A DNA stretch of 37,614 bases from Octopus bimaculoides. Lineage: Eukaryota. Made by a program: the position numbers and the translations under genes. Below, piece by piece: positions 2,446 through 34,778 of the stretch. The stretch covers positions 39,953,246 to 39,990,859 of the forward strand of contig NC_068984.1 of NCBI RefSeq assembly GCF_001194135.2. Reading direction: 5' to 3'. The stretch's first letter is position 1; each line of letters opens with the position of its first letter. Under the pieces are notes generated by a model. It was not told the DNA's origin. It did not search any database and was given only the letters and a program-made list of their open reading frames with translations.

Positions 2446-2805
2446 ATTTATATGTCTGCCTGAGTTGTCTCCTCTGATGTCAATGTCTACTTTGCATTTT
2501 GTATCAAACAAGACCAATGAAATAAGTATTAGACAAAAGACCAGGATTAATATATTTGAGTAAAACCTTTAAAAATAGTAACCCAGTGTGACTACCAATG
2601 AAAGATGACAACAAAAGATGGGAGCTGGTAGATTTTTATTACTATATAAGAAATAACAATGAAGAATATTATTTATTTTTCCTGAGCAGAGATAAAATAG
2701 TTAAAACGATAAGGCATTAAATTAATTGCTTATGATTTGAAATCCAATAAAGGACTTTCATGTTTGGTCAAACTATTTTCTTTTAAATTACTTAAATTCT
2801 CTTAG

Positions 2806-3769: not shown

Positions 3770-4546
3770 AGAAAAAATTCAAAAAGTATCTTGAGAGAAA
3801 AGCTGAACATTAGAAGCATCAGTTGTGGCGTGCAAGAGAGACGATTGCGCTGGTATGGACATGTGGTGAGAATGGAGGAGGATAGCTGCGTGAAAAAGTG
3901 CCACACCCTAACAGTTGAGGGAACCCGTGGAAGAGGTAGGCCCAGGAAGACCTGGGCTGAGGTGGTGAGGCAAGACCTTCGTACATTGGGCCTCACCGAG
4001 GCGATGACTACTGACCGAGACCTTTGGAAATGTGCTGTGCGTGAGAAGACCNNNNNNNNNNNNNNNNNNNNNNNNNNNNNNNNNNNNNNNNNNNNNNNNN
4101 NNNNNNNNNNNNNNNNNNNNNNNNNNNNNNNNNNNNNNNNNNNNNNNNNNNNNNNNNNNNNNNNNNNNNNNNNNNNNNNNNNNNNNNNNNNNNNNNNNNN
4201 NNNNNNNNNNNNNNNNNNNNNNNNNNNNNNNNNNNNNNNNNNNNNNNNNNNNNNNNNNNNNNNNNNNNNNNNNNNNNNNNNNNNNNNNNNNNNNNNNNNN
4301 NNNNNNNNNNNNNNNNNNNNNNNNNNNNNNNNNNNNNNNNNNNNNGCGTGGCCGTTTTCGTGCGGGTGACACGTAAAAGCACCCACTACACTCTCTGAGT
4401 GGTTGGCGTTAGGAAGGGCATCCAGCTGTAGAAACTCTGCCAAATCAGACTGGAGCCTGGTGTTGCCATCCGGTTTCACCAGTCCTCAGTCAAATCGTCC
4501 AACCCATGCTAGCATGGAAAGCGGACGTTAAACGATGATGATGATG
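3770..4546 (+). mobile_element. 5'-truncated young RTE-clade LINE (RT C-terminus, N-gap 4052-4345, 3' UTR, (GAT)n tail)
   Basis: ERRLRWYGHVVRMEEDSCVKKC...GTRGRGRPRKTWAEVVRQDL...DRDLWK is the typical RTE C-terminus. Confidence 0.88.
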
Positions 4547-5094
4547 AATGAGAAGCAGTCCAAGGAATATAAACAATATCAAATATACATACCCAAGGTA
4601 TGTGTATTGCCATTTCATGGCAGGCTGTGATTTATAGGCAAGCGAGAAAATTTCCATGTCAATATGCCTGATGTAAAAACACCTAGAAGTCATAGACAAA
4701 TGAGATAACTTATGCCAGGGTTCTGGCCATGAACTGACAATACACATACCTTGTGTATGTGTGTTTGATGTTGCTATTTTTCTTCAGGCTGCTTCTCATT
4801 CATATTTGAAATTTTTCTATGGCCTAAACCTAATATTAAAAACTAACTTAAAATATTCAGTATAGATGTATTTAAACCAGCTTTTAAAATATAATAAACC
4901 ACATATTTTGTCTTTTCAGATCATTGAATGTGAATAATATGTATATAAAAAGCATAAATGCTGATGTAAATTGAAATAAGTCTCCATGGACTCTCCCATC
5001 ATCAGATGACATATCAGGGTTCTGCAATATCTTGCTGAACAAATACGCAGTAAATTTGTTATAGTCATTAAATGTTCGTGTTCTCATAAGCTCA

Positions 5095-5883: not shown

Positions 5884-7680
5884 ATATCTCGAACAAAATC
5901 TCATACATTTACTTAAGTCATGTGATTTACTTAAAAACTCTTTTAAAAGTTTCTCTCACTCATCCAGTTTCGATAACTTTACATGGTGATGAAAAGGTGT
6001 TTGATACACTTTCATTGTCATATAAAGATGGATATTGTTTCAATCAAAATCTGTTTTTAAAATTTATGAAAATTTAAAGCATTTTTATTAATGTAGGCTA
6101 CTGTTAATCTTGATGACAGAGTTTTTAGTTCTAAGCAAAGGAAATGTTAAAGTTCATGCTTTTTCATAAATAGATGTTTATAAAGTTAGTTCAAAGCAGT
6201 TATTGAATTTATTGTACCATCCTCATTTTAATATTGAATTGAAAGTGGTACTAAGTATGAGAGCTTTAATACAATAATATGCTTTGACGGAAAACAAAAT
6301 ACAAAGGATATAGTTGTATGAAACTTGTACTCCTTAGGACTACGTCCAGTGTTTTAATGGCTGCTATGAATCATTATAAAACAGCAAAATGAGGAGTACA
6401 AAGAGGTAAAAAATGGAAGAGCGCTGAAGATAATGTTTGACAATATCTTTTTCTTTTTCTTATGACCTGAATTCAAACCCTATTAAGATTAACTTTGTGT
6501 TTCATGCATTCAAAGTTGCTAAAATAGAAGTACCAGATACAAATATGTGACACTTTGCCAATGCAAAAAATATCAGTAGAACACAACAGAGTGAAAGATC
6601 CTTTCATATGTATGGTCTGATTCTAATAGAATAAACTGAATTATATGGAAAAAACAAAAAACGAGCATGACTAAGATAAAGATAAAAGCTATGTTGTTTT
6701 CAATGATTTCGAGAAAGAATAGGAAGAAACTAATGATTGCACAGGTGACATATGACATTTTAACTAGACAGACAATGGCAAAACCTTTCAGTACATTGTT
6801 TAGTCCAAAGTACGATAATGATTCAGTCGAGGAAATAGATAAGTTCTGGTACATAGACAACCAGTCAATTTCAGAGTAGATTTGGTGTTGACTGAACATT
6901 TGCAGACCTTCTGACATGATATAGAATCTAGGTGTTTTTCTTAAAATATTTCACAATACACGCTGCAAAAGTGTTGTTATTTTAAAGGAAGGAGAAAATA
7001 TAACAGATAAGAAAAGAGATTACTGTGATCTGACTGACATATAATGAAAATCTGAAAAATAGACTGAGTTTAAGTAAATCAGATATGAAGGAAAGATTGG
7101 TATGTGTTTTTTGACCAAATAACTCATGAGAGCTGACAGTAATTATACAATAGTAAATATATGAAAGATTTTAAAACATCTTCATTGACCTAAGAGAGAT
7201 TAAAGGGTTTAAAAAGATTGACCTATGCCATGACAAACGAGACTGAACTTATTGATTTGTGTTAATCTATATGAACAATGAATGTTGCATGTATCAACAT
7301 TGATGTCGATAAAAATCTATTACATTCTATTACACTCTATTACATTAGCATTGAATCATATAGTACAATTTTAAAGATATTTAGTAATACTATTTATACT
7401 TTTTCATTTTATTTTTATTGATCAAGGGAATATACTTGAAGCAGCCTTACGATAAGCAAGTTATGTAGAAACTCAGGGTAAAAGATTAGTTTTAAAATTA
7501 GTTTAATCATATTACTGAAATTTGTGATGAAAATTTAGAGTTAGTATTTTTAGTATTAGTAATAACTGATAATATTTTCAAAGAATAAGTATATGAAATT
7601 CTGTATTTTTTAATCTTAGAACTTGAAATCAAATGAAGGATGGATTGTGTCGGAATATTTAATTATATTTGCACTTAATA

Positions 7681-9529: not shown

Positions 9530-9735
9530 CAAACTGGCAGAATTGTTTCTATGCCAGGCAAAATGCTAAGAGGCATTTTCTGCAGTTCTTTATGTTCCGA
9601 GTTCAAATGCAGCTGAAGTCAACTCTATCTTTCATCCTTTTGGGGTTGATAAAATATATACCAACTGAGCACTGTGATCAATGTAATTGACTTCCCCTTC
9701 CCCTCAAAATTGTTAGTGTTGTGCTAAAATTAGAA
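9530..9735 (+). mobile_element. SINE family C, plus-strand copy
   Basis: GGCAGAATTG...TTCCGAGTTCAAAT...TTTCATCCTTTTGGGGTTGATAAAA; reverse complement of the copies in the 10668-14434 array. Confidence 0.75.
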
Positions 9736-9739
9736 TATG

Positions 9740-9795
9740 AATGTGTGTATATGTGTGTGTGTGTGTGTGTATCTATGTATATATATGTATGTATG

Positions 9796-9843
<48 letters not shown>

Positions 9844-10014
9844 ACATACATATATATGTATATTCACATATACATGTTTTCTGTAATATACATACATTAT
9901 ATATATATATATATATTACTATATATATATTACATATATGTAATTATGTGTGTGTGTGTATATATATATATAGAGAATATATATATAGAATATATATAGT
10001 ATATATATAGAGAG

Positions 10015-10086
<72 letters not shown>

Positions 10087-10150
10087 AGGGGGAGAAAGCT
10101 ACAAACAGAGGACACACACACACACACACACATATACATATGTATGTATG
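9740..10150. repeat. Compound microsatellite (TG)n/(TA)n/(GA)n/(CA)n
   Basis: Direct reading; source of the IYIY/CVCV ORFs. Confidence 0.95.
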
Positions 10151-10909
10151 TTCCCAACCGTTAAAAATTGATTCACAGACTTCAACATTGCTCTAATGCT
10201 TTGAGTTAAACATCTGCTTCTAGAGAATCTGCATAACAGAAACAGATAACATAACATGTGCATGAATAAAATAAACAAATATTATTATAGAAATTTTTAA
10301 AAAATTCCCTTCTGCCCCAACAAAGAGCTTCACTCAAAATATCAAATTCTGGACCTTCAGACTTATTCGAATTTTCTGACACTACCTACCACTAGTTCCC
10401 CCTAGCCCCAACTCAGACTCTGGTTTCCATAATTTCCTAAGAGTTATTATGGGCTATAATTAATTAAATATCTAATATAAACAGAAACTGGATGGAATAA
10501 GATAACGGCTGAGAAATAAAAGTATGAAAGTCTATATACAAGAATGAGTGAAGTTATGGATTAGAGATATTCTGCAGAATTAGACTGCAACACTTATTTG
10601 CTGTGAAATTAATTCAAATACTACTACCAATGAAATCTGCACCTGCGGTCGGCTTCACTGGGGCTCAAATAATAATAATTATAATAGTAAAATTAATTCT
10701 TCTTTCTGTAGGAACGAAACCTGAAATTTTGAGGGGAGGGGCCAGTCAATTACATTGACCCCAGTGCTTAGTTGGCACTTATTTTACTGACCCAGAAGCA
10801 TGAAAGGCAAAATTGAACTTGGTGAAAATAGAACTTTGACCATAAAGCTGGAAGAAATGCTGTTGAGCATTTTGAGCTGTATGGTAACAATTCAGCTAGT
10901 GCACTACCT

Positions 10910-10946
<37 letters not shown>

Positions 10947-11392
10947 TAATAGTAGTAATAGTAGTTTCAAATTTTGGTATAAGGCCAGCAATTTTAGGGG
11001 TAGGTATAAGTTGATTACTTTGCCTTCAGTGTTCAACTGACCCTGAAAGGAAGAAAGGCAAAGTTGACCTCAACAGAATTTGAACCCAGAATGAAAAGAC
11101 ATGGCAAATGCCATGAAGCATTTTGTCTGATGTGCTAATGGTTCTGCCAGCTCACCACCTTATATGATAATAATAATAATCCTTTCCATTATTGGCACAA
11201 GGCTTGAAATTTGAGGGAGGGTGATAGTCAATTACATCAAGTCCAGTACTCAACTGGTACTTATTTTATTGACCCCAAAAAGATGAAAGGCAAAGTCGAC
11301 CTCAGCAAAATTTGAACTCAGGACATAAAGACTGATGAAATGCTGCTAAGCAGTTTGCCTGGTGTGCTAATGGTTCTGCTAGCTTGCTGTCT

Positions 11393-11445
<53 letters not shown>

Positions 11446-11744
11446 GATGATGATAATTCTTTTTACTATAGGCACAAGGTCTGAAATTTTCATGGGAGGG
11501 GGTTGGTCAATTATATCAACTCCAGTGCTTGACTGATACTTTGTTTTATTGACCTTGAAAGGATAAAAAAGCATAGTTGGGCATGGTGGGACTTGAGCTC
11601 AGAATGTAAAGCTGCAATAAATGCTACTAAATATTTTGTGTGGTGTGCTAATGATTCTACCAACTTACTACCCTACCCTTAATAATAATAATAATAATAA
11701 TAATAATGATGATGATGATGATGATGATGATGATAATAATAATA

Positions 11745-11986
11745 ATAGAGTCAAAATTAAAAGAAGAGTGCCATTTGTTATCTTGTGAACAATATCTCGA
11801 CATCTCACGTGTCTTCGACTGGTTCAAAAAATAAATTTGTCAATCTACTTCATTTTGGTTAATATAGAAAGGATTGAGGTAACTCCTCCTGAAGACATAG
11901 AGTCAAAATTAAAAGAAGAGTGCCATTTGTTATCTTGTGAACAATATTTCGACATCTCGCGTGTCTTCGACTGGTTCAAAAAATAA
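11745..11986. repeat. 90-bp direct duplication (11745-11834 and 11897-11986)
   Basis: ATAGAGTCAAAATTAAAAGAAGAGTGCC...GGTTCAAAAAATAA; two mismatches; period 152 bp. Confidence 0.9.
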
Positions 11987-12018
11987 TTATGATGATAATA
12001 ATCATCATCATAATAATT

Positions 12019-12392
12019 ATAAGAGCACTCAGAGAGTACAAACACCCACCAAGGCAACACGAATGTCCTCTCAATGATTAGCCAGAGATGATTTTTAAAA
12101 TGAGAATATCTGAAATAAACTCGACTGCTCTCACAAACAAGAGTACAAAAATGAACCTGAGCGCTCTCAAAAATTAAGTAAAAAAAAAATTGGAAAAATA
12201 ATCCAGAATCCTTGTTTGGTACCAGATTGATCCCAAAATCTAATCGGGTTATGTCAGTCACAAGGCCAAACATCCCTAAAAGTTTCATCCGAACCCATCC
12301 TACAGTTCTTGAGATATCTTGTCCACGGACAAACAAACAGACAAATATGACTGAAAACAATACATCTGCCTTCGCTAAAGCAGAGGTAATAA
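12019..12392 (-). mobile_element. Non-autonomous Helentron-type element (HINE/DINE-1-like)
   Basis: The minus strand starts ATTACCTCTGC...GGCAGATGT...TTTGTCTGTTTGTTTGTCCGTGG...GGATGAAACTTT and ends GCCTTGGTGGGTGTTTGTACTCTCTGAGTGCTCTT. Both ends match recalled HINE termini. Confidence 0.7.
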
Positions 12393-13200
12393 TAGCAATA
12401 ATAGTAGAAGTAGTTTCAAGTTTTGATATGAAGCCAGCAGATTAAGGGGAAAAGGATGTCAATTACACCAAACCCTGTGCTCAGTTTGTACCTATTTTAT
12501 TGCCTCCAAAATGTTGGAAAAGCAAAGTCAATCTTAAATGTAAAGAGCTGGAAGAAATGCCACTAAGCCTGACATGCTAACAACTTTGCCAAGTCACCAC
12601 TGTTATAAGGCTTCAAATTTTGATACAAGGCCAGCAGTTTTAGGGAGAGGGGATTAGTTGATTACATTGTCACTAATACTGAACTTGTACTTCATTTTAT
12701 CAGCCCTGGAGGGATGAAAGGCAAAGTTGACCTCAGTGGGATTTGAACTCAGAATGTAAAGAGCTAAGCATTTTGTCTAATATGCTATTGATTCTGCCAG
12801 CTTGCTGTCTTAAGATCATAGACTTTGCTATGTCATATGACTTGGATGCTTAGTATCATGGAAGAGATCCTGAGACTCTTCACAACAGGTTATCTACTCT
12901 AACAGAATTAGCCAGAGCAAGAGAAACTGAGAGCTCTGAGAAGTGCAATGTACAATAATAATAATAATAATAATGATTTCAAATTTTGGCACAAGGCCAG
13001 CAAGTTCAGGGAAGATGTGTCGATCACATTGACCCCAGTGCTCAACTGGTACTTATTTTATCGACCCCAAAAAGATGAAAAGCAAAGACAACCCTGATGG
13101 CATTTGAACTTAGAACATATAGACAAAATGCTGCTTGGCATTTTGCCCAGTGTGCTAATGGTTTTGCCAGCTCATTGCCTTAACAATAACAATAATAATA

Positions 13201-14222
13201 TAAATGGATGCAGCAGACTGACACCAATAAAATACTTGCAAATAATATGACAAGGCAGCTCAATACATACACTGGTCAAAATGCTGCATGTACAACATCC
13301 CTCACAAAAATAGCAGGTGGGAACACAAACCACAAGTTGCCTAGGATGCTGAGGTTAACATCCTCTGGAATTTCAGTGTTCAGACTGATTGAGAAAACAG
13401 GAAAGCTAACGAGATCTCATTGTGAAAAATTATATTGAAAAAACTTATCTTCTGATTGATTTTGCAGTCCCAGTTGATGAAAACACATCTCTAAAAACAT
13501 TTGAGAAAGTGAGCAAATATGAGGATCTGGAGACTGAAAGCAGAATATCTCAAAACACCATTACCTATTATTATTATTGGGGTACTTGGAATGATATCAA
13601 GAGGAGCAAACAAATATGTAGACCAAATCCCTGGCAGCCCCAAAATAAGTGAATTGCAAAAGATCATACTTATGGGTACATCACGTATCTATACTATAAA
13701 AGGCAGATTTTCTGTGTGTGTGTGTATGTTTAAAATTCATACATTTACACAATTCCAACAAAGCAGCGCAAAAAGTTGTTTTGCACAAGCATTTCTATAG
13801 CCAATTAGACGGATGAAATTTACGTACGCTTAATAATGTTAAGCAAAACAGCCTTCAGACTTTCCCTATTAATTTCATCGTCTTTTGAATTATGAACATA
13901 TTTACGCCATAAGGGTTTTTTCGTTGTAAGGCTTTCTTTTTTAGTTGATTTTCACCTAGCAAGACTTATTGTAGATGGCGTAATAAGTCACACCCGGACA
14001 ACGTTGGGTTATACAGCTAGTTCTACATAAATTCCTCTGCATGTAAATGCAACCTTACTCATTCTGTCTTTTTTTTTTCTCCCACAGACATCAGTGTTTA
14101 AGTTACATAGCATCTCACCTGCAAGCATCTTTTGATGCAAAACTTTGTCCCTTGATGTCTCTGATTGAGACTTGGGTGTAACTCATAAATTAAAGCAAAA
14201 CCAAAACAATAATAATAATAAT
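13201..14222 (+). mobile_element. 5'-truncated R4/Dong-like non-LTR retrotransposon (restriction-like endonuclease domain, 3' UTR, (AAT)n tail), interrupted by a Helitron
   Basis: KTYLLIDFAVPVDENTSLKTFEKVSKYEDL...PIIIIGVLGMI...IPGSPKISELQKIILMGTSR matches the REL C-terminus of R4-clade ORFs; (AAT)n on both flanks. Confidence 0.75.
13688..14020 (+). mobile_element. Complete non-autonomous Helitron (333 bp)
   Basis: A|TCTATACTATAAAA 5' end; subterminal hairpin CCCGGACAACGTTGGG (13993-14008); CTAG|T 3' end; no TSD. Removing it restores the host ORF end MGTSRILHKFLCM*. Confidence 0.9.
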
Positions 14223-14989
14223 ACTTTCAAATTTTGGCACAAGGCCAGCAACTTCGGGGAAGGGGTTAGTCGATTACATCGACCCCAGTGTTCAACTGGT
14301 ACTTGTTTTATTGACCCAGAAGGATGTAAGGTAAAAATCGACCTTAGCAGAATTGGAGCTCAAAACGTAAAGACAGACAAAATGCCACTAAGCATTTTGT
14401 CCAGCATATTAACGATTCTGCCAGCTTACTACCTTAATAATGATAATAATAATAATAATGCTTTCTAATAATAATAATAATAATAATGCTTTCTAATAAT
14501 AATAATAATAATCAGAAAGACAATACCCATGAATAGGTTGTTACAACCTTGAGACAGTGTTGATACGTTATACCTACCATGGAAGTGTTGGAGAATAAAT
14601 GAATGATGACAAATTTAATGAAAGGGAAAAGTAATCATGTGTGTAAATTTACCAGCTGTCAACCAAGTATGTCCCAAATTCTCTTATTTCCCACTTGTAC
14701 ACAAGGCACCAGACTCTGATGAACAAACAAGCCAATAACTTTACCACAGAAAACCCTAACCCTCTTCCTGTAAGTTCAAAAAACCTTTAGGGCAGCAACC
14801 ATAAATATAGGTACAATGGATCTGTACTGTGTGCCACAGTTAACATGGAAGAGATGCTCAACCAAATTCCTCACAAGTTTATTTATAAGCAACTCAAATA
14901 GAAATATTTATCTAGATATACACCCCAAAGGTAGAGCCTGTCACAAGAACAGGACCACTTCTATGAGACTCATCTGCAGATTTCCTCAT

Positions 14990-15480
14990 CAACAGCTGAC
15001 AGTGACCATTTAATCATGGCTGGTGACTTCAATGGACATGTTGGCAAACACATTGATGGCTTCTGCAACACACATGACAGTTATGATTATGGCTTGAGAA
15101 ATGAGGAGGGTGTAGGCTCTTGGTGTTCTGTGATGCAACTGGCTTAACAATTTGCAACACTCTCTTTAAGAAACTGACCAACCACCTCATCATCTACCAC
15201 TCTGGCAAATACACAAATCAGATAAATTACATTCTTTCTAAGAAATGGAACAGAAGGGCTATTGTAAATACCAAAACATTTCCTAGTGAAGAATGTACTA
15301 CACAACATAGGTTAGTAACTCCATACTTGGATCTAGGCAGACACAGAAATGAAAGGTGGTATGAAGAAAGATCTGGAAACTAAAACATCCTGGGATTGGG
15401 AATAGATTTAGATAAATTCTAGAAAGAGTTGGATACCTGTAGCACAGATGACAATTGGGAATTTTTATGAAACAACTTGC
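14990..15480 (+). mobile_element. RTE LINE apurinic-endonuclease domain fossil
   Basis: DHLIMAGDFNGHVGK...GLRNEEG...CNTLFKK...QINYIL...PSEECTTQHRLV, with frameshifts. Confidence 0.85.
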
Positions 15481-15696: not shown

Positions 15697-15940
15697 CTAT
15701 TACTCTTTCATTGGATTCAGTCATTGTACTGTGGTCATACTGAAGCAATGCCTTCTAGAGTACAGTTGTTGAGATTGACTCCCAGTAAATATTTTAATGA
15801 ACAGACCATATTTTATGGATTATAGAAGGACAAAAGTTAAAGTGAACTCAGGCAGAATTTGAATTTATAAGATAAAGGCAGACAAGCAAAAACAATATAG
15901 CATTTCTGTGTAATATTCTACCAATTGTGCCATGTACCCA
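15697..15940 (-). mobile_element. Degenerate SINE with family C head/body and CR1-type tail
   Basis: TTCAGTCATTGTACTGTGGTCATACTG (tail as in 23680-23740) is joined to GCAGAATTTGAA...GCATTT (family C body). Confidence 0.5.
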
Positions 15941-16023
15941 CCACACACAGACACATTCACCTATATGCACACATTTCTTTTTGTAAAGATGAAATGATGA
16001 GAGTCATCACAATTTATATATAA

Positions 16024-16284
16024 NNNNNNNNNNNNNNNNNNNNNNNNNNNNNNNNNNNNNNNNNNNNNNNNNNNNNNNNNNNNNNNNNNNNNNNNNNNNN
16101 NNNNNNNNNNNNNNNNNNNNNNNNNNNNNNNNNNNNNNNNNNNNNNNNNNNNNNNNNNNNNNNNNNNNNNNNNNNNNNNNNNNNNNNNNNNNNNNNNNNN
16201 NNNNNNNNNNNNNNNNNNNNNNNNNNNNNNNNNNNNNNNNNNNNNNNNNNNNNNNNNNNNNNNNNNNNNNNNNNNNNNNNNNNN
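16024..16284. other. Assembly gap flanked by an identical 53-bp sequence (15971-16023 = 16285-16337)
   Basis: Direct reading; typical of overlapping contig ends. Confidence 0.85.
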
Positions 16285-16376: not shown

Positions 16377-16650
16377 CATCATCATCATCATCATCGTTTA
16401 ACGTCCGCTTTCCATGCTAGCATGGGTTGGACGATTTGACTGAGGACTGGTGAAACCGGATGGCAACACCAGGCTCCAGTCTGATTTGGCAGAGTTTCTA
16501 CAGCTGGATGCCCTTCCTAACGCCAACCACTCAGAGAGTGTAGTGGGTGCTTTTACGTGTCACCCGCACGAAAACGGCCACGCTCGAAATGGTGTCTTTT
16601 ATGTGCCACCCGCACAAGCCAGTCCAGGGGCACTGGCAACGATCTCGCTC
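16377..16650 (-). mobile_element. RTE LINE 3' end, young copy
   Basis: 16377-16619 is the reverse complement of about 1-240, with no mismatch found by eye. Confidence 0.88.
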
Positions 16651-16776
16651 GCAAGAAATAACCAAATAAATTATACTGAATATTATATTTCAAACCAATA
16701 GGAATGATATCACACAGCTTACTTGAGAGAGAAATAGATAGAAAAAGAAATTGAAAAAGTATTACAATTTACTTAT

Positions 16777-17066
16777 CATCATCATTGTTTACGGTCCGCT
16801 TTCCATGCTAGCATGGGTTGGACGATTTGACTGAGGACTGGTGAAACCAGATGGCTACACCAGGCTCCAGTCTGATTTGGCAGAGTTTCTACAGCTGGAT
16901 GCCCTTCCTAACGCCAACCACTCCGAGAGTGTAGTGGGTGCTTTTTACATGCCACCGGCACGAAGGCCAGTCAGGCGGTACTGGCAACAGCCACGCTCAA
17001 AATGATGTATTTTATGTGTCACCCACACAAGAGCCAGTCCAGGGGCACTGGCAACGATCTCACTCG
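16777..17066 (-). mobile_element. RTE LINE 3' end, second adjacent copy (related subfamily)
   Basis: Same tail with a few substitutions; two approximately 65-bp UTR repeat units. Confidence 0.85.
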
Positions 17067-17131
17067 AAAATCCTTACACATGTCAGCAATTAAAAATAAC
17101 ATAAAACACAGATGTAATAAATTAAATTCTA

Positions 17132-17179: not shown

Positions 17180-17449
17180 TTAGGTAGTTGCATGTTGACG
17201 CTGATTTTCTTTAGTATCATCTTCATTGTTTTCTACATCCTCTTCAATGGGATCAAATTTAGGCAATTGATATGTTCGAAGGATAGGGTCTCTAGGTGGC
17301 ATCCATTCCGGATTTATCTTCCCGTGAATTCTCCACTGGCCATATATGTTTGATATATGATTTTCAAATACAACATATTCCAAAACATCTTTTATGAGAT
17401 TTTCACTACCATACATTAGACGACCAAATCGGTCATAAATCGCCAGGCA
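17180..17449 (-). CDS. MRPL45: MRPL45 last coding exon (mitochondrial ribosomal protein L45, Tim44-like domain)
   Basis: [49 protein letters not shown] closely matches the recalled human [32 protein letters not shown]...YGSWRMHTKIVPPW; TTTCAG acceptor, phase 0; TAA stop. Confidence 0.95.
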
Positions 17450-17604
17450 CTGAAACGAAAACAAATTTTAAAACTGAAGCCAAGATAATTGCAGCAAAAA
17501 AAAAAAAAGATTTATTGTAGATACTGGATATGTGCATGATAAGACTTATTTTAAGAAGTAGAGCTGAAAAACTTCCATATTACTTACAACTGTAATACAT
17601 GAAC

Positions 17605-17634
17605 ACGCATACACACACGCACACACACACACAC

Positions 17635-17669
<35 letters not shown>
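17605..17669. repeat. (CA)n microsatellite
   Basis: Direct reading. Confidence 0.95.
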
Positions 17670-17673
<4 letters not shown>

Positions 17674-17770
17674 TTATAGGTCTTCTGTCTGTCTGAAGAT
17701 TAATATTCCAGTGTTTTAATCAACTAAGCTATCTATTCACTGAATTATAGTATAAAGTGGTACAGTATTC

Positions 17771-17965
17771 TTAACCCTTTAGCATTCAGATTCCTCAATC
17801 ACATGTAATGCTTATTTATTAACATCATGCATTATCATAATTTGATAATTTATTTTCAGAATGACATTGTAGTGTAGGTGTTAGAGGCTGGATCTGGCTG
17901 GTTTGAACATAAAACATGTAGAATATTTGGGCTGGATATGGCTAGTTTAAATGCTAAAGGGTTAA
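17771..17965. mobile_element. piggyBac-type MITE
   Basis: TTAA|CCCTTTAGCATT ... AATGCTAAAGGG|TTAA: TIRs plus TTAA target duplication. Confidence 0.85.
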
Positions 17966-18194
17966 TGTAATCCTTAGGGAGAATCAGCAGGACACAGTGA
18001 GTGCATGTGTGTGTGGGTAAACCATTTGAATTAGAGGTACAATCCATCTAATCGGTTTTTAAAGTTTCTTTCTACTATATTTCAATCACAGTACTAGGAT
18101 GACCTGAGGTTATTGCAGTGAAAATTTCATAATGGTGAAAAGAATTTCTTAAATACTCAATCATGCCTTTGCTCACACATATCCATATTGTATA

Positions 18195-18948
18195 TATTAG
18201 GTCATCCTATAAATAATGTGCTTTTTTTCAAGTGCATGAACTAAAACTTGGAGGGGGATGGGATAAACTACCTGCATCAACTTACTATAAAAAGCAAGTA
18301 GTAATTTTACCTTGTACTAATTCTTAGTGCAAGTTTTGAAGAGTGCAGTTCGATTTTAACAGCTATTTTTTTAAAGCTATAATAGAAGTGACAAAGGAGA
18401 ATATTTAGTATATTTTGCTTTATGAGTTCAATAAAGGCAACAACGCAACAGAAAGTGCGAGGAATATTAATGCAGTATATGGGGATCGGACAAGCATAAG
18501 CCAGTGTCAATGGTGGTTCCAGAAATTCTGAGCCTCGTCCTGGAAGGTCTGTAGAACTTGACGACGATGTCCTGCAAACTCTGGTGGAAAAAAATCCCAT
18601 TGTAACTGTTGAGGAACAAGCAGAGAAGCTTGGATTTGGTCATTCAACTATTCATCAACACTTGCATGCCATTGAAAAAGTCAGCAAATTGGGTCAATGG
18701 GTTCCTCACAAACTTTCCGAGTCTAATCGCAGGCAGAAAGTGAATGTGTGTTATTCTTTGCTATCATGTCTCACGAATGAACCTTTTTTTTAGACTGAAT
18801 AGTGACTGTAATGAGTAATGGGTTCTCTATAAAAATGTCAAGTGCCGAAGACAGTGGGTAGGGAAAAGAGAAACATTGGCACCCCAGGCTGAAGAAAGTC
18901 TTCACCCATGCAAGGTGTTATTATCTGTTTGGTGGGATATGAAAGGTA
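18195..18948 (+). mobile_element. Mariner transposon 5' part, degenerate transposase
   Basis: TIR TATTAGGTCATCC; HTH region, LGQWVPHKL motif and LLSVWWDMKG; homologous to 27689-28770. Confidence 0.85.
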
Positions 18949-19930
18949 TTAATGTTTGAAAATGAGATATAGTTTATCATTGAAAGGCTTGTAAAACCTT
19001 CTAAAAAATTTTTTTGAGAAAATGTTTTTAATTTAATATTGTCCCTTCTCAGTAACTTTCTTCACATGATTTATTTGGACCTGTATAATTTGCAAAACTA
19101 ATTCATTAATTATAAAACAATCAGATCAACCACAGCAGATAGAGCCAATAGGATTAATGCTTCAGTGCTGGTAAATGATAGTAGTCTGTATCTCTGGTAG
19201 AGATACTTAACTCTCAGACACCAAAACCATCTCACTATAAATAGAAACCATATGAAGGTACAAGTCATTGCTGTCAGCAGTGTGGATATTGCCAAATTGA
19301 TGAATGTCGTACCCAATTATGTTCTTTAACTAGCTTCACTTGATAGCTAACAGCTTTCCCCAAGTCACTCAATAAAAAAACACTTATCATCATCTTTTGT
19401 GGTGGTCGAATGAACTCTAAAACATATTGGCATCAAGAATTGTTAAGTACTAATTACCACAGAAAAAAAAGTGACGCATGAGAGGGAAGAAACTGCAAAG
19501 AGCTGAAGTTATATGCAGACAGCAACTGAGTAATTTCCCTGGTTTATTTTTTAATATGGTAGTATACATGCTTACACATATTCATTATGGTAAATCTACT
19601 TAATGTTTATCTTCACTACTTTGACAAGTAGAGTGAGGGTTCTGCTTAACTGAGGAGGTCTAATAAACTTGAAATATGCTGGAAGTTTTCTCCTGTACTT
19701 GATGAAATGATTAAAATAACATTACTCTTTATGCTAATGTCTTTTGTTTACCATATAATTATTAAGTAGCATTCTGATGCTCAGTACATGTTAACAATTG
19801 ATTATATAATTAAGTTAGTAGAGACGGTCATAACAAAACAAGTCTTTGAAAGAGAGAGAGACAGACAGAGGCTTAGTCTTTTGCTAATGAACTGTTTCTT
19901 TATGTCTGATGATATGTATATGGGAATGAT

Positions 19931-23679: not shown

Positions 23680-24060
23680 TCTTTTATCTTTTCCTTGTTT
23701 CAGTCATTGGACTGCATCCTTGCTGGGGCACTATCTTGGAGTGTTTAGTTGACCAAATCAATCCCAGTACTTATTTTTAAAGCACTTATTTTATCAATCT
23801 CCATTGCTGAACCACTAAGTTACAGGGCTGTAAACAAACCAACACTGGTTGCCAAGTGGTTGTGGGTGACAAATACATATAAAAAGACACACACACACAT
23901 AGATATACACATATATACATATATGTGACAAGTTTTTCTCACTTTATGTTTACCAAATCTCCTCACAAGTATTTGATTGACCCAGGGTAATAATGGAAGA
24001 CTGAACCCAGGACCATGTTGTTGGTAAGTAAACTTCTTACCACATAGCCATACCTGCACT
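23680..24060 (-). mobile_element. SINE family D (family B-type head, CR1-type tail)
   Basis: The minus strand begins with the GTGGTAAGAAGTTTACTTACC head; (TG)n-like middle; ends CCCCAGCAAGGATGCAGTCCAATGACTGAAAA plus A-rich tail. Confidence 0.7.
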
Positions 24061-25965: not shown

Positions 25966-26479
25966 CTTTATTGGCCATTTTTCCATGCTTGCATGGGTTG
26001 GATGGAATTTATGGAGGCAAATTTTCTACGGACAGATACATTCCTACAGAATATTGTTGGAAATGAATAACAGTGACAGTCATTTATAACCATCAAATGA
26101 TGTCAAGACAAGGAGACATAAATACACACACACACACACAGTTATACATACAAACTTATTAGCAGTTCAAATATGCTTCAGGCATATTCAAACTTGTAAG
26201 AAAGTCATATGTGTAATTTGCCATGGACAAAATTTCTTGCTTTAGACATAGATGTAAACACACAGACTCATCTATATATGTATGTAAAAGTGCAAATATG
26301 TACACACACACACATTTATATACTCCACTTCCTCTAACACCCATCACTTCTCTATCCACAGCACTACTTGGCTGCTGTAATTGCTTGAGAGCAGAACTAG
26401 CAAAAGCTACATCTCTCACCATTTATTATTTCTTGTCCCAGTTACCCCTACCCCCACCCCTTCAATCTTGCATTCTCAT

Positions 26480-26950
26480 CATCATTCCTTCCCACACTAT
26501 TTTCACAGATTGACTTGTTTCTCTGCTGTCAGTTATCTATCCTTCTCCTCTGTCGTACTTCATCTTAGCACCTTCTCATATCTGTCATCATGCCCCACTC
26601 ACTTTAGCCATCCTTATGTACTCTTACATGTCCCTCCCCATCACTCCTACACCTTGCACATCACCTCCCTACCATCTGTTCTATCTTCCACCCTAAGTTA
26701 CCTCTGTTTCTCTCACCTTAACCCCTCTTTATATTGGTATTTTCCCATCAACTGCACCTCCACCTTTGTTCATCACTTGCTACATTCATGTCTACCACCA
26801 TTTCCAACCATCTCCCCTCACATTCTTATGAAACTACTCCCCTCCCTCCACTGCCAATCCACTGCATGTATTCTCTCTTATGCTCACCTTGTACTTGAGG
26901 GTGAGCATAAGTCTCTTTTCTTCTTTTCAGCTACTCTTACCTAACCTTAT
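26480..26950 (-). mobile_element. Possible highly degenerate LINE RT fragment
   Basis: Minus-strand GWLK*VGHDDR resembles the RLxWxGH motif; otherwise weak. Confidence 0.3.
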
Positions 26951-27119
26951 AAAATGCAGGTTAGTCATATATCTTCTTTAGAGCAAGATACCTGCACCAG
27001 TCCTTCTACCATAACATTAACATTTCAGCACCTGGCATAAAGCCACTGCTCCACTCTTAACTACTTCCCCCATTTAGTCAAGGGGGCTTCCTTTTCCCTT
27101 TTCTTGCTCTTACCCTGGT

Positions 27120-27688: not shown

Positions 27689-28770
27689 TATTGGGTCATC
27701 CCATAAATAATGCATTTTTTTTCAATTTCATGAACTAAAAGTTGGATGGGTACAGGATAAACTATCTGCATCAACTTGCTATAAAAGCAAGTAGTAATTT
27801 TACCTTGTACTTATTCTTAGTGCAAATTTCGAAGAGTGCAGTTCGATTTTAACAGTTATATTTTCAAAGCTATAATAGAAGTGACAAAGGAGCATATTCA
27901 GCATATTTTGCTTTATGAGTTCAATAAAGATAACAATGCAATGGAAAGTGCGAGGAATATTAATGCAGTATATGGGGATCGGACAATAAGTGTAAGTCAG
28001 TGTCAACAGTGGTTCCAGAAAATCCAAGCCGGAAACTATAGCCTAGAAGACAAGCCTCATCCTGGAAGATCTGTAGAGCTTGACGAGGATGTCCTGCAAA
28101 CTCTGGAAGAACAAAATCCCATCGTAACTGTTGAGGAACTAGCAGAAAAGCTTGGATTTGGTCATTCAATCATTAATTGACACCTGTGTGCCATTGGAAA
28201 AGTCAGCAAATTGGGTCAATGGGTTCCTCACAAACTTTCCAAGTCCAATCGAATGCAGAGAATGAATTTGTGCTCTTCTTTGCTGTCACATCTCACGAAC
28301 GACCTTCTTTTTGGACCAAATAGTGACTGGTGACAATGTGTTCTCTATAAAAATGTCAAGTGCTAAAGACAGTGAGTAGGGAAAGGAGAAACACCAGCAC
28401 CCCAAGCTAAAGAAGGTCTTCACCCACATAAGGTGTTGTTATCTGTTTGGTGGGATATGAAAAGATGAAAGGTTTAGTCCACTTTGAATTTTTAGACCCA
28501 AACCAAATTATAAAGGAGATCTACTGCATGCAGCTTGTGCAGCTTAACTTAGCGCTAGAAGAAAAACAACCATCTTTGGTTTCAAGACAAGAGGTGTTCT
28601 TTCATTAGGATAATATTCAGCCACATACAGCAAGGATGACGTTGCAAAGGCTGGAACAGTTTGAACAAGAAACGATACTCCACCCACTATATTTGTTGGA
28701 CATTGCTCCATCTGATTATCATTTATTCCGTAGTCTTCAAAATCATTTGGACAGAAAAAATATGAATTCT
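27689..28770 (+). mobile_element. Near-full-length degenerate mariner (DD34D) transposon
   Basis: TIR TATTGGGTCATCCCATAAATAATGC; WVPHKL, IVTGD, HxDN and DIAPSDYHLFRSLQN motifs; stops and frameshifts; right end missing. Confidence 0.9.
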
Positions 28771-33354: not shown

Positions 33355-34778
33355 CAGAGTGGAGCAGAGAGGATGGACGTTTTTGAAATGGCTATTGCTC
33401 AGCCCTAGTGGGAGGGACATATTTCTGACAGGTACCATTTGGTCTGTGGTGTCTTAGCATTTATTATTATTTTTCAGATGAAACCATAGCACTGTGGATG
33501 ATAGAGCATTGTGTGTTTGCCTATGACAGTTACATGAAGAATAATGAGTCTGTCACAGCAGTTCAGAGTGAGTTTCGGTGCCATTTCAACATTCACTGAA
33601 ATCAAGCTATTCCCACCTGTAACACAATCTTACATTAGGTGAATGCACTTCGTACACAAGGTACACTAATGAATAGGAGACCAGTGGGGCACTGTGAATG
33701 GTATGGACGCTGGAAAATGTGGAATGCGTCAGACAAGCTTTGATACAGAGTCCAAATTGCTCTGCTTGGAAGCATTCCACTGAACCTGGGATCAGTAATC
33801 GATCAGCAAGGAATATTTTGCACAAAGACCTGTATTTCCACCCTTACAAATTGGTCATTGAGCAACAGTTGAAACCATGGGATTATGCGCAGTGGCTTAA
33901 CTTCGCATGTCAGATGAGAGCAATTTTTGAGGCAAATGACAGCCTCATTTTGTTAATGAGTGATGAAGCTCATTTTCATTTCAACAGCATGGTGAATCAA
34001 CAGAACTGCTGAGAGAACTGCACAAAAGACTACTGCACAGCCTAAAGTGACGGTCTGGTGTGCTGTTGGAAAAGCTGCCGTCATTGGTCCTTACTTTTTT
34101 GAAGACAATAATAGAAATGCTGTTACTGAGAACTCTGAGTGTTACATTGAGATAATAAACAACTTAATGAAAATGAATGCCTATTCGACATGTGTGGCTT
34201 CAGCAGGATGGAGCAATGGTCCACACAGCCAGAGCATCAATGGATGTTCTTCACCTTCTCTTCGGTGACCACCTCATTTCCGGGTTTGCTGACATTCCTT
34301 GGCCCCTTCAGTCCCCCAATTTGTCCATGTGTGACTATTTCTTGTGGGGAAACCTCAAGACACATGTGTATGCACATAATCCCCATACACTGGATGATTT
34401 GAAGGAAGCTATTCGTGTGGAAGCTGTTAGTGCTGGAGAGTGTGGAGGCCAACTTCCAAAAACGCCTTCAGGAATGCAGCAATGAAAATGGACACCATAT
34501 GATGGATGTTGTTTTCCACACTTGCTTTTGACAAATGCTAATTCAATACAAATACATTGATGGCAATAAAATTTGTTTGCAGCTAAAATTAATGATTTTG
34601 TGAATTTTTCAAAAATGTCCATACTCTCCTCAATACAATCTTATTATTTTAATCTTTCTTCGGATCTTAGATTGAAACTGATAAATTCGAACAATTGGGT
34701 AAAATTGAATTTTCAGTTGAGAATAAGGCCTAATTTTTACATGGAGAGGATGGACGTTTTTCAAAAACATCCACCCTG
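33355..34778 (+). mobile_element. Tc1/mariner superfamily DD41D (rosa) transposon, degenerate
   Basis: TA|CAGAGTGG... and ...CCACCCTG|TA ends; MSDEAHF, QQDGA and WPLQSPNLSMCDYFLWG motifs; 41 residues counted between the second and third Asp. Confidence 0.85.
34633..34726. repeat. About 94-bp sequence repeated directly at 36026-36120
   Basis: ATACAATCTTATTATTTTAATCTTTCTTCGGATCTTAGA.TGAAACTGATAAATTCGAACAATTGGGTAAAA...TTTTCAGTTGAGAATAA; only a few differences. Confidence 0.9.

Follow-up and report, generated by a model that had tools for sequence, protein, structure and literature searches.

Within the whole stretch of DNA that we analysed (the window, 37,614 nt), nhmmer identified eight near-full-length copies (~205-215 bp) of a single SINE-like family between 10707 and 14436; every one of them is on the minus strand, as an earlier note on this DNA had described. 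The array probably arose by repeated, independent retrotransposition of this single family into one (ATT)n/(AAT)n locus over a long period, and the best explanation is that the insertion targets were pre-existing (ATT)n tracts, mostly the tails of earlier copies. The basis for this is the anatomy of the array, the non-random clustering, the independence of the copies, their mixed subfamilies and ages, and the single-polarity microsatellite lying on both sides of most copies; what we infer is that tail-target pairing was the cause, which LINE was the partner and in what order the insertions took place. The parts of the array (10668-14512), together with the other matches to the family in the window, are as follows.

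10668-10690, minus strand: (ATT)n tail of copy A, the 3' boundary of the array with unique DNA beyond (TRF, sequence)
10691-10912, minus strand: copy A (nhmmer match 10707-10911), type-2 3' end ...CCTACAGAAAGAAGAATT
10913-10960, minus strand: 3' end of B to head of A, (ACT/ATT) then (ATT)10 (TRF)
10961-11164, minus strand: copy B (nhmmer match 10966-11162), type-1 3' end ...CCAAAATTTGAA, private 16-bp deletion
11165-11180, minus strand: 3' end of C to head of B, short (ATT)4 ATC ATA
11181-11395, minus strand: copy C (nhmmer match 11184-11394), type-2 3' end ...CCAATAATGGAAAGG
11396-11457, minus strand: 3' end of D to head of C, (ATC)n then (ATT)12 (TRF)
11458-11679, minus strand: copy D (nhmmer match 11464-11675), type-2 3' end ...CCTATAGTAAAAAGA
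11680-11747, minus strand: (ATT)n(ATC)9(ATT)8 directly upstream of the head of D (TRF)
11748-11981, no strand: foreign 235-bp insert within the microsatellite, with a 90-bp direct repeat (repeat span 11745-11986, 97.8% identity, period 152; self-BLAST)
11982-12022, minus strand: remnant AAT/ATG-type microsatellite between two foreign inserts (TRF)
12023-12390, plus strand: fragment of another element, ending ...GCAGAGGTAATAAT, tail-to-tail with the tail of E; no Pfam match
12391-12414, minus strand: degenerate tail of E, ACT ACT TCT ACT ATT ATT GCT ATT ATT
12415-12606, minus strand: copy E (nhmmer match 12415-12600), type-1 3' end; two private deletions of 7 and 17 bp, the latter taking out the B-box-like region
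12607-12812, minus strand: copy F (nhmmer match 12612-12812), type-1 3' end, private 15-bp deletion
12813-12953, no strand: 141 bp of non-SINE DNA from the head of F to the tail of G
12954-12977, minus strand: tail of copy G, ATC(ATT)7GT (TRF)
12978-13182, minus strand: copy G, type-1 3' end, candidate 7-nt target duplication TTATTGT
13183-13203, minus strand: short imperfect ATT-like patch just upstream of the head of G, a candidate target site
13204-14207, no strand: about 1 kb of other, partly TE-like DNA from G to H
14208-14223, minus strand: tail of copy H, (ATT)5 (TRF)
14224-14437, minus strand: copy H (nhmmer match 14226-14436), type-1 3' end
14438-14512, minus strand: (ATT)n tract upstream of the head of H with two AGAAAGC(ATT)n units (TRF, motif search)
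9531-9735, plus strand: copy X, the sole other full-length copy, outside the chain (nhmmer)
2471-2568, 6451-6538, 15764-15942 and 23738-23821: partial or distant SINE matches (nhmmer)

The window is dense in many kinds of transposable element, and the array is located about 2.7 kb downstream of the final exon of a same-strand MRPL45-like gene. Two further candidate features gained no support: copy G lying inside an older element with rejoinable halves, where the joined flanks gave no continuous frame and no Pfam match, and a possible LINE endonuclease fragment at 14935-15380, suspected from a GDFNGHVG-like motif, which had no Pfam match.

The copies are 186-212 bp long and the element nominally about 210 bp. 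It has a head bearing motifs that resemble the A and B boxes, then a conserved core, and an (ATT)n tail after its 3' end; its consensus is non-coding, with stops in all frames. By eye, the consensus head carries TGGCAGAATCG, which agrees with the A box TRGCNNAGTGG at 9/11 positions, and copy F carries AGTTCAAATCC, which agrees with the B box GGTTCRANNCC at 10/11 positions and lies ~59 nt downstream of the A-box-like motif. ARAGORN gave a poor cloverleaf (undetermined anticodon, long extra arm), and this only with relaxed thresholds and a CpG-restored consensus. The genomic copies had no tRNA match in Rfam at E ≤ 10, and no tRNA or SINE-related family was found when 9-16.5 kb was searched against Rfam; sub-threshold miRNA-like matches on TA/TG microsatellites were treated as low-complexity artefacts. 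In copies A, B, C, D, E, G and H the 3' end runs into an (ATT)n tail or a degenerate ATT/ACT/ATC one; F and X lack such a tail, X also having a 5' truncation of ~9 nt. A candidate target-site duplication was seen at G (the 7-nt TTATTGT) and none for F or E; for copies inside the microsatellite any duplication would be indistinguishable from the repeat.

Over the whole 37.6 kb nhmmer reported 9 full and 4 partial or distant matches to the family, with 8 of the 9 full copies packed into 3.7 kb; elsewhere there is a single full copy (X), the rest being partial or distant, in line with the earlier description. That this clustering might be no greater than chance was not borne out within the window, where at least 8 of 9 starts inside 3730 bp had a simulated P = 6e-6 (P = 5.5e-4 with partial matches included). 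The placement of all eight array copies on one strand had P = 0.008, to which the shared orientation of G and H contributes weak evidence because non-microsatellite DNA separates these two from the chains; with about four independent groups P is ~0.125. Head-to-head spacings, taken from the nhmmer coordinates, are uneven (about 250, 230, 280, 925, 210, 370 and 1250 bp), and TRF found no SINE-length period.

The array is also where almost all of the AAT-class microsatellite of the window is found, with 234 bases inside the array versus 9 elsewhere; all perfect AAT tracts of at least 4 units lie within it apart from one 12-bp TAT tract. The tracts have a single polarity, as do 8/8 copies (234 bases vs 12 of opposite polarity). 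Copies A, B, C, D and H each have (ATT)n immediately upstream of the head, and G has an ATT-like patch there. Flanking by microsatellite at either end is seen for A, B, C, D and H and partly for G, but not for E, F and X. In members of the chain the repeat upstream of the head is also simply the tail of the neighbour. The earlier note had placed an AAT tract at most junctions: this was found at D|C (69 bp), C|B (21 bp) and B|A (54 bp), the only three junctions of pure microsatellite, but not at F|E, which is 11 bp without microsatellite, while the H|G, G|F and E|D intervals (1043, 165 and 739 bp) include non-SINE DNA. A search for the motif AGAAAGC(ATT)n gave 6 matches where 0.58 would be expected, and 5 of the 6 lie in the array. 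The repeated motif with (ATA)n at 14460-14512, previously read as tail-only insertions, is indeed present as two GCTTTC+(TAA)n units at 14461-14512 (TRF period 28, 2.7 copies, 97% matches), and these could be tail-only copies with extreme 5' truncation or else the product of a 28-bp local duplication.

A different explanation for the clustering would be that copies accumulated without any tail targeting in an AT-rich, permissive or slowly purged region, their adjacency and common strand being coincidental or due to selection against antisense insertions near a gene. The abundance of many kinds of transposable element in the window would suit such a region, TE hotspots exist at the 100-kb scale in O. 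vulgaris (PMC13282606), and strand-biased retention is conceivable about 2.7 kb downstream of the same-strand MRPL45-like exon. However, random placement in 3.7 kb would almost never produce three junctions of 21-69 bp of pure microsatellite, a control SINE family with (GAT)n tails in the same window (at least 14 matches) is dispersed on both strands and unchained, and the ATT tracts on the head side are left unexplained, which makes regional accumulation unlikely.

The eight copies are 59-77% identical in pairwise comparisons and every indel of at least 3 bp is private to its copy. Neighbours are no more alike than non-neighbours (adjacency permutation: P = 0.76), and the single clade which the earlier note had associated with local tandem duplication was not recovered, monophyly of A-H having a bootstrap of 0.05. 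Bootstraps for adjacent pairs were also low (A,B 0; B,C 0.002; E,F 0; C,D 0.11), the best-supported groups being non-adjacent: B with F (0.75) and A with the copy on L001, a contig of another species (0.69). The two 3'-end variants described earlier do exist, and both also occur outside this locus, in L001 and L003; they do not alternate, the types from A to H being 2, 1, 2, 2, 1, 1, 1 and 1.

By Jukes-Cantor (JC) distance to the local consensus, the copies comprise an old class (A 0.27, D 0.25 and E 0.26) and a younger class (B 0.15, C 0.15, F 0.13, G 0.14 and H 0.13), although only nine copies underlie the consensus from which these ages are estimated, and the estimates carry a bias towards the majority type. 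Copy H, with a JC of 0.13 and 5/15 CpGs retained versus 0-2 in the other copies, is the youngest-looking. The younger B and C are positioned between the older D and A, which is expected if B and C landed in the tail of D.

Taken together, the tree, the adjacency permutation, the private indels, the mixed subfamilies and the differing ages make the rejection of simple tandem duplication well supported, as had been argued from the differences between copies. Tandem duplication could still be ancient, with unequal crossing-over or slippage acting at the DNA level on one or a few SINE-plus-microsatellite units that then diverged for a long time, as in a SINE-derived satellite. This would predict the co-orientation and the head-to-tail order, the copies are old enough (13-27% from the consensus) for some duplication signal to have eroded, and local duplication does occur here in the 28-bp AGAAAGC(ATT)n units (97%) and the 90-bp repeat at 11745-11986 (97.8%). 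Against it are the same lack of a clade or of any grouping of adjacent pairs, the private indels, the interleaving of two 3'-end subfamilies that are present at other loci too, the irregular spacing without a SINE-length TRF period, and neighbours that belong to differing divergence classes. Ancient duplication is therefore largely refuted, and we regard it as very improbable.

Some junctions might instead have been produced in one event, with the reverse transcriptase, on reaching the 5' end of one SINE RNA, switching to the 3' end of a second, so that a dimer or multimer was inserted. Only 11 bp, free of microsatellite, lie between F and E, the divergence of B (0.150) is close to that of C (0.146), and L003, a contig from a sister species, has adjacent co-oriented partial copies with no AAT repeats, all of which would fit. 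However, F and E are about twofold apart in divergence (JC 0.13 and 0.26), B and C have different 3'-end subfamilies, and D|C and B|A each join different age classes, so we consider template switching a doubtful source of these junctions. A misjoining of repeats or microsatellites in the draft assembly is less credible still: the window does contain N gaps that adjoin young repeats (1519-1567, 4052-4345 and 16024-16284), but 10668-14512 is free of them, the copies could not be confused in assembly because they are 23-41% different, and none of the junction microsatellites exceeds 69 bp.

Returning to insertion into earlier tails, we propose that the enzyme of a partner LINE would nick the target and the freed DNA 3' end would serve as primer for cDNA synthesis, with the SINE RNA's 3' tail as template. 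The nicked (AAT)n strand of an existing tail would pair with the (AUU)n end of the incoming SINE RNA, and the incoming copy would settle in or beside the tail of the older copy; the same orientation would follow from this pairing. Each event would add a tail and duplicate part of the target, and because of this the locus would gain target sequence with every insertion, a positive feedback. Later unrelated insertions and small deletions would then have split the chain into its present pieces. LINEs and SINEs commonly terminate in short tandem repeats, which are used when reverse transcription is initiated (PMC3747384), and target-primed reverse transcription involves pairing of the RNA tail with the target strand that has been nicked (PMC3812793); it is the workings of this process that suggest a tail could prime the next insertion. 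An endonuclease preference for (TAA/ATT)n would yield an identical picture.

The self-reinforcing landing pad proposed in the earlier note fits A-D and H well, given the (ATT)n on both sides, the uniform polarity and the younger B and C between D and A. It accounts only weakly for G, because G sits at a short ATT-like patch within other DNA, and the F-E junction is not explained by tail targeting since F has neither a tail microsatellite nor ATT on its head side.

Candidate LINE partners are the RTE and Dong-R4 elements of octopus. The full-length LINEs in the O. bimaculoides library are RTE and Dong, and the 3' UTR of octopus RTE-2_OV is mostly microsatellite (PMC9115989); in O. vulgaris the most recently active LINE insertions are Dong-R4 (PMC13282606), and (TAA)n is the specific insertion site of Dong elements, one of which comes from a snail (PMC3812793). 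The (ATT)n on the sense strand of the SINE may perhaps be the complement of the product of a Dong partner. No LINE 3' end resembling ...CCTTGTGCCAAAATTTGAA or ...AGAAAG(ATT)n was found in the window.

The array is a clear local example of known retroposon behaviour and not a new kind of element. Alu and L1 insertions prefer the A-rich tails of earlier Alu copies, the L1 endonuclease having a TTAAAA-like target. As with Alu in Alu tails, the tail of an earlier retroposon appears to be the preferred target, giving co-oriented head-to-tail pairs; unlike the poly(A) tail of Alu, the tail here is a trinucleotide repeat, (ATT)n, on a mollusc SINE with a putatively tRNA-like head, and the octopus chain is unusually long, with four copies directly joined and eight in 3.8 kb. 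Microsatellite-specific non-LTR retrotransposons include Waldo, Mino, Kibi and Koshi as well as Dong (R4 clade, (TAA)n), which is known from the mollusc Biomphalaria (PMC3812793); in octopus, Dong-R4 elements are numerous and have been active recently (PMC13282606). As for Dong, orientation is fixed relative to the repeat, and a microsatellite that may be the target flanks both sides (here of A, B, C, D and H). However, Dong-type elements are autonomous LINEs with a sequence-specific endonuclease, whereas the array consists of non-autonomous 210-bp SINEs of which F, and also X outside the array, are not in microsatellite.

Eel UnaL2/UnaSINE1 ((TGTAA)n) and RTE-clade LINEs likewise carry a short tandem repeat after the 3' end, which is involved in starting reverse transcription or in its slippage (PMC3747384), with every insertion seeding a new microsatellite (PMC2887409). 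Octopus RTE-2_OV shares the trait of a microsatellite 3' UTR (PMC9115989, where its repeat unit is not given), but chaining into earlier tails is neither defining for pairs of the UnaL2/UnaSINE1 and RTE types nor reported for them in the cited literature. Squamate SINE-derived satellites (sSats) are also made of head-to-tail SINE-related units, which are partial SINE monomers that were multiplied at the DNA level and tend to homogenise (PMC10702118). The octopus units differ in being full-length and irregularly spaced, in having 59-77% identity and mixed subfamilies, and in not being monophyletic. The octopus SINE families OK, OR1 and OR2 were reportedly described by Ohshima and Okada in 1994. 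tRNA-Core/tRNA-Deu SINEs have been annotated in octopus genomes (PMC8967140), and SINEs make up about 11.6% of the O. vulgaris genome (PMC13282606); these are abundant tRNA-related octopus SINEs, a group to which our family may belong.

As a single locus, the array is a clear illustration and falls short of a discovery. It is possible, though we hold this only tentatively, that the SINE family and its LINE partner form a dedicated octopod (ATT)n-homing system in which the family's own tail is the main supply of targets. In that case, insertion would be autocatalytic with co-oriented chains genome-wide, and much of the AAT-type microsatellite content, as well as part of the octopus-specific SINE expansion, would be explained. 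If chaining is general, it would provide a simple rule for the landing site and orientation of a major octopus SINE, bear on the debate over how SINE expansion has reshaped octopus genomes, and explain the origin and clustering of AAT microsatellites in them. It would also affect the design of AAT markers, because the flanks would be repetitive, and assembly, because chains break short-read contigs, and the chains would be ordered, datable insertion stacks offering presence/absence characters for octopod phylogeny.

We also looked for relatives of the array elsewhere. Exact look-ups of two ORFs in or beside the array and a protein search with concatenated ORFs of the non-SINE segments gave no match, scanning metagenome and viral contig collections for exact DNA patterns turned up no more than chance partial matches, and a sequence-string search of a paper collection for the SINE family returned nothing relevant. 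A profile search with the open antisense frame of the SINE found two Logan ORFs only. An orthologous 1.6-kb contig from a related species (L009) was recognised by its MRPL45-like exon and stops about 1 kb before the array. Related SINE copies do occur in contigs of another species, and the contigs of the two Logan ORFs, L001-L005, carry diverged relatives of the family which are not orthologous to the array, L003 being the one with adjacent co-oriented partial copies.

We searched the window with iterated nhmmer, seeded with the best-preserved copy, and found a family of approximately 210 bp with eight near-full-length copies (A-H) between 10707 and 14436, all eight on the minus strand, as the earlier note had described. 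The window is repeat-dense, AT-rich and eukaryotic, and no assembly gaps lie within the array. Octopus genomes are reportedly very SINE-rich (PMC13282606, PMC8967140). Four further matches in the window were partial or came from related families sharing the core.

Full-length copies of the family found by nhmmer
9531-9735, plus strand, copy X (the only full-length copy besides A-H)
10707-10911, minus strand, copy A
10966-11162, minus strand, copy B
11184-11394, minus strand, copy C
11464-11675, minus strand, copy D
12415-12600, minus strand, copy E
12612-12812, minus strand, copy F
12978-13182, minus strand, copy G
14226-14436, minus strand, copy H

The clustering of A-H exceeds chance: when copies were placed randomly in the window, at least eight of nine full copies fell inside 3730 bp in 6e-6 of simulations, or 5.5e-4 when all 13 matches were counted. 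The occurrence of 8/8 copies on one strand had P = 0.008, and shared orientation by itself had P of approximately 0.125 when about four independent groups were counted, with G and H outside the chains. AAT-type microsatellite made up 234 bases in the array vs 9 elsewhere in the window, and the array tracts had uniform polarity, as expected for the tails of minus-strand copies. As an internal control we used another SINE-like family, whose tails are (GAT)n; at least 14 matches to it were found window-wide on both strands and not chained (90-242, 4399-4547, 16378-16530, 16775-16922 and no fewer than 10 other sites). Three of these copies were identical across approximately 150 bp and two of the three lay about 100 bp or less from N gaps, suggesting a very young subfamily which breaks the assembly.

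The head of the A-H family starts with TAAGGTAGTGAGCTGGCAGAAT and contains an A-box-like motif (TGGCAGAATCG), with a B-box-like motif approximately 59 nt downstream (AGTTCAAATCC in copy F) and a conserved core 3' of the box motifs (…TTTGCCTTTCATCC…GGGTCGATAAAATAAGTACCAG…). A tRNA relationship of the head is weakly supported: ARAGORN folded the CpG-restored consensus into a poor cloverleaf at relaxed thresholds, and an Rfam search of the genomic copies gave no tRNA match. The family 3' end, which is followed by an (ATT)n tail, takes two forms: type 1 (…GCTGGCCTTGTGCCAAAATTTGAA) in B, E, F, G, H and X, and type 2 (…TTTCAGGCCTTGTGCC-TATAGTAGAAAG(A/G)) in A, C and D. For comparison we used a few short contigs of one sequencing series from a related cephalopod, recovered by ORF look-ups, a protein search with the open antisense frame of the SINE and DNA pattern scans. 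Both 3' ends were present there at unrelated loci (type 2 in contig L001, type 1 in contig L003), so the types are genuine subfamilies interleaved in the array; they do not alternate as previously described, since their order from A to H is 2,1,2,2,1,1,1,1. Weaker matches at 15764-15942 (minus), 23738-23821 (minus) and 2471-2568 (plus) have the family core (…GATAAAATAAGTAC…) with a different 3' part (…CAATGACTGAA…), which points to a SINE superfamily whose members have a central domain in common.

Junctions between neighbouring copies, in element orientation
H to G, 1043 bp, other DNA from the tail of H to an ATT-like patch at the head of G
G to F, 165 bp, tail of G and 141 bp of other DNA
F to E, 11 bp, GCCTTATAACA, without microsatellite
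E to D, 739 bp, two inserts of foreign DNA, both bordered by AAT/ATG-type microsatellite
D to C, 69 bp, pure microsatellite
C to B, 21 bp, pure microsatellite
B to A, 54 bp, pure microsatellite

Based on these contents the array comprises a chain of four copies, a pair that abuts and two copies standing alone. An AAT tract had been claimed for most junctions; this holds for D/C, C/B and B/A, which are pure microsatellite, but not for F/E, which has none, while G/F, H/G and E/D include other DNA. The AAT/ATG microsatellite upstream of D is split by a 235-bp foreign insert containing a direct repeat of 90 bp (97.8% identity, spacing 152 bp, 11745-11986). This repeat is far younger than the adjacent SINE copies and has the appearance of a recent local duplication of 1.6 copies. 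At 12023-12390 (plus) lies a fragment of another element, without a match in a Pfam search, which terminates in ...GCCTTCGCTAAAGCAGAGGTAATAAT; this (TAA)-like end and the (ATT)n tail of E come together tail-to-tail in one microsatellite. Contig L003 contains three partial family copies at 370-815 which are adjacent and co-oriented with no AAT microsatellite between them, indicating that co-oriented adjacency also arises without a visible repeat.

We compared the copies to determine whether they had arisen by local duplication of one unit. Pairwise identity among A-H was 59-77%. Mean identity across all 28 pairs was 0.681; the seven neighbour pairs averaged 0.673 and the four directly joined pairs 0.660 (adjacency permutation: P = 0.76 and P = 0.83, respectively). 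Every indel of at least 3 bp was private to a single copy (B, 16 bp; E, 7 and 17 bp; F, 15 bp; G, 6 bp). In bootstrapped neighbour-joining trees of A-H, X and one L001 copy, the single clade with shared diagnostic mutations, which the earlier note had named as the sign of local duplication, did not emerge, A-H being monophyletic in 5% of replicates. Support for adjacent pairs was low (A,B 0; B,C 0.002; E,F 0; C,D 0.11), and the highest values were for the non-adjacent pair B and F (0.75) and for A with the L001 copy (0.69). As there is no clade, indels are private and neighbours are not extra-similar, local duplication of one unit is very unlikely, in agreement with the earlier note's argument against simple tandem duplication. 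The defining features of SINE-derived satellites (PMC10702118), for which the array was tested, were not found.

Non-CpG divergence from the local consensus (JC) fell into two classes, a younger one of B, C, F, G and H (about 0.13-0.15) and an older one of A, D, E and X (about 0.25-0.27), although these estimates are rough because the consensus was built from nine copies and is biased towards the majority type. Copy H kept 5/15 consensus CpGs and the others 0-2. Despite this, neighbouring copies differ in age, with younger B and C between older D and A, as predicted by insertion into the tail of D. Non-coding identity between contig L009, from a related species, and the window was 85-91%, implying a per-lineage divergence well under that of every A-H copy (at least 0.13 from consensus), and therefore most of the eight copies are probably older than this species split.

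Target-primed reverse transcription is an established model (PMC3747384, PMC3812793). Under this model, nicking of the (AAT)n strand in an older tail would supply a primer that pairs with an incoming SINE RNA at its (AUU)n end, placing the new copy inside the old tail with its orientation forced to match. Each insertion would contribute a fresh tail and a duplicated target stretch, giving the self-reinforcing landing pad which the earlier note had proposed. This proposal fits A, B, C, D and H, which have (ATT)n on both head and tail sides with one common polarity; the head of G has a short, imperfect ATT patch. However, it leaves F (no microsatellite tail, no upstream ATT, directly abutting E) and X (no ATT tail) unexplained, and G and H are not part of chains. 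The F-E junction may reflect a deletion which removed a short repeat, or a template-switch dimer, although F and E differ twofold in age, which speaks against a single event.

A repeat-preferring endonuclease, rather than tail pairing, would lead to the same pattern; a preference of this kind is seen in Dong elements, which insert into (TAA)n and are present in a snail (PMC3812793). Candidates for the octopus LINE partner are RTE, whose 3' UTR in octopus is mostly microsatellite (PMC9115989), and Dong-R4, whose insertions are the most recently active among the LINE clades of O. vulgaris (PMC13282606).

Copy H, which looks youngest and is of type 1, is embedded in an (ATT)n tract holding two AGAAAGC(ATT)n units. 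The motif had 6 matches in the window vs 0.58 expected, 5/6 of them in the array. The units match the family's own 3' end and tail, the fit being slightly, though not decisively, closer to type 2 than to type 1. They may represent tail-only insertions with extreme 5' truncation, as had been proposed; they may equally be one unit duplicated locally, given a TRF period of 28 with 97% matches.

The array behaves like known retroposons that insert into the tails of older ones, like non-LTR elements specific for microsatellites and like LINE/SINE pairs with repeat tails, and is a well-resolved local example of these known behaviours. It differs from SINE-derived satellites. In the papers that we read on octopus repeats, which deal with the abundance of SINEs, their waves of expansion and hotspots on a 100-kb scale, we found no fine-scale microsatellite-joined chains. 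The significance is modest unless chaining proves general for the family genome-wide.

The array lies approximately 2.7 kb downstream of an ORF resembling mitochondrial ribosomal protein L45 (MRPL45), on the same strand.

17180-17464, minus strand, MRPL45-like C-terminal exon, Tim44-like part, ORF to stop codon (Pfam, protein search)

The best matches to this exon were molluscan, the top one being 87% identical and from related cephalopod reads. Through it we found L009, which is orthologous to the window from 19865 down to 15482 and ends approximately 1 kb before the array; a search for contigs neighbouring L009 found none. L009 lacks several window-specific insertions, so this locus lends itself to presence/absence comparison. 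These include two young (GAT)n-tailed copies (16380-16651 and 16778-17084), co-oriented, 125 bp apart and just downstream of the exon, which are, judged by this absence, lineage-specific insertions. A stretch of approximately 1.86 kb (17499-19362) is also missing from L009, at a site flanked by L009 496 and 500, and would be either an insertion in the window lineage or a deletion in the L009 lineage.

Other elements were also present in the window.

9741-10150, long TA/TG/AG/AC microsatellite block adjoining X
14935-15380, plus strand, ORFs directly right of the array
27836-28180, plus strand, mariner-type transposase remnant (HTH_48 (Mos1) domain, E 2.8e-19)
33698-34485, plus strand, ORFs resembling transposase fragments

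Matches resembling mir-297/mir-466 in Rfam at 9741-10150 were sub-threshold and look like low-complexity artefacts, so were rejected. The ORFs beside the array carry a GDFNGHVG-like motif suggestive of a LINE endonuclease domain; Pfam assigned them no family and gave no match for the ORFs at 33.7-34.5 kb. Finally, GC skew was strongly negative (-0.45) at 26001-27000, overlapping both a C/T-rich low-complexity stretch and a 187-aa ORF rich in Ser/Leu/Pro/His.
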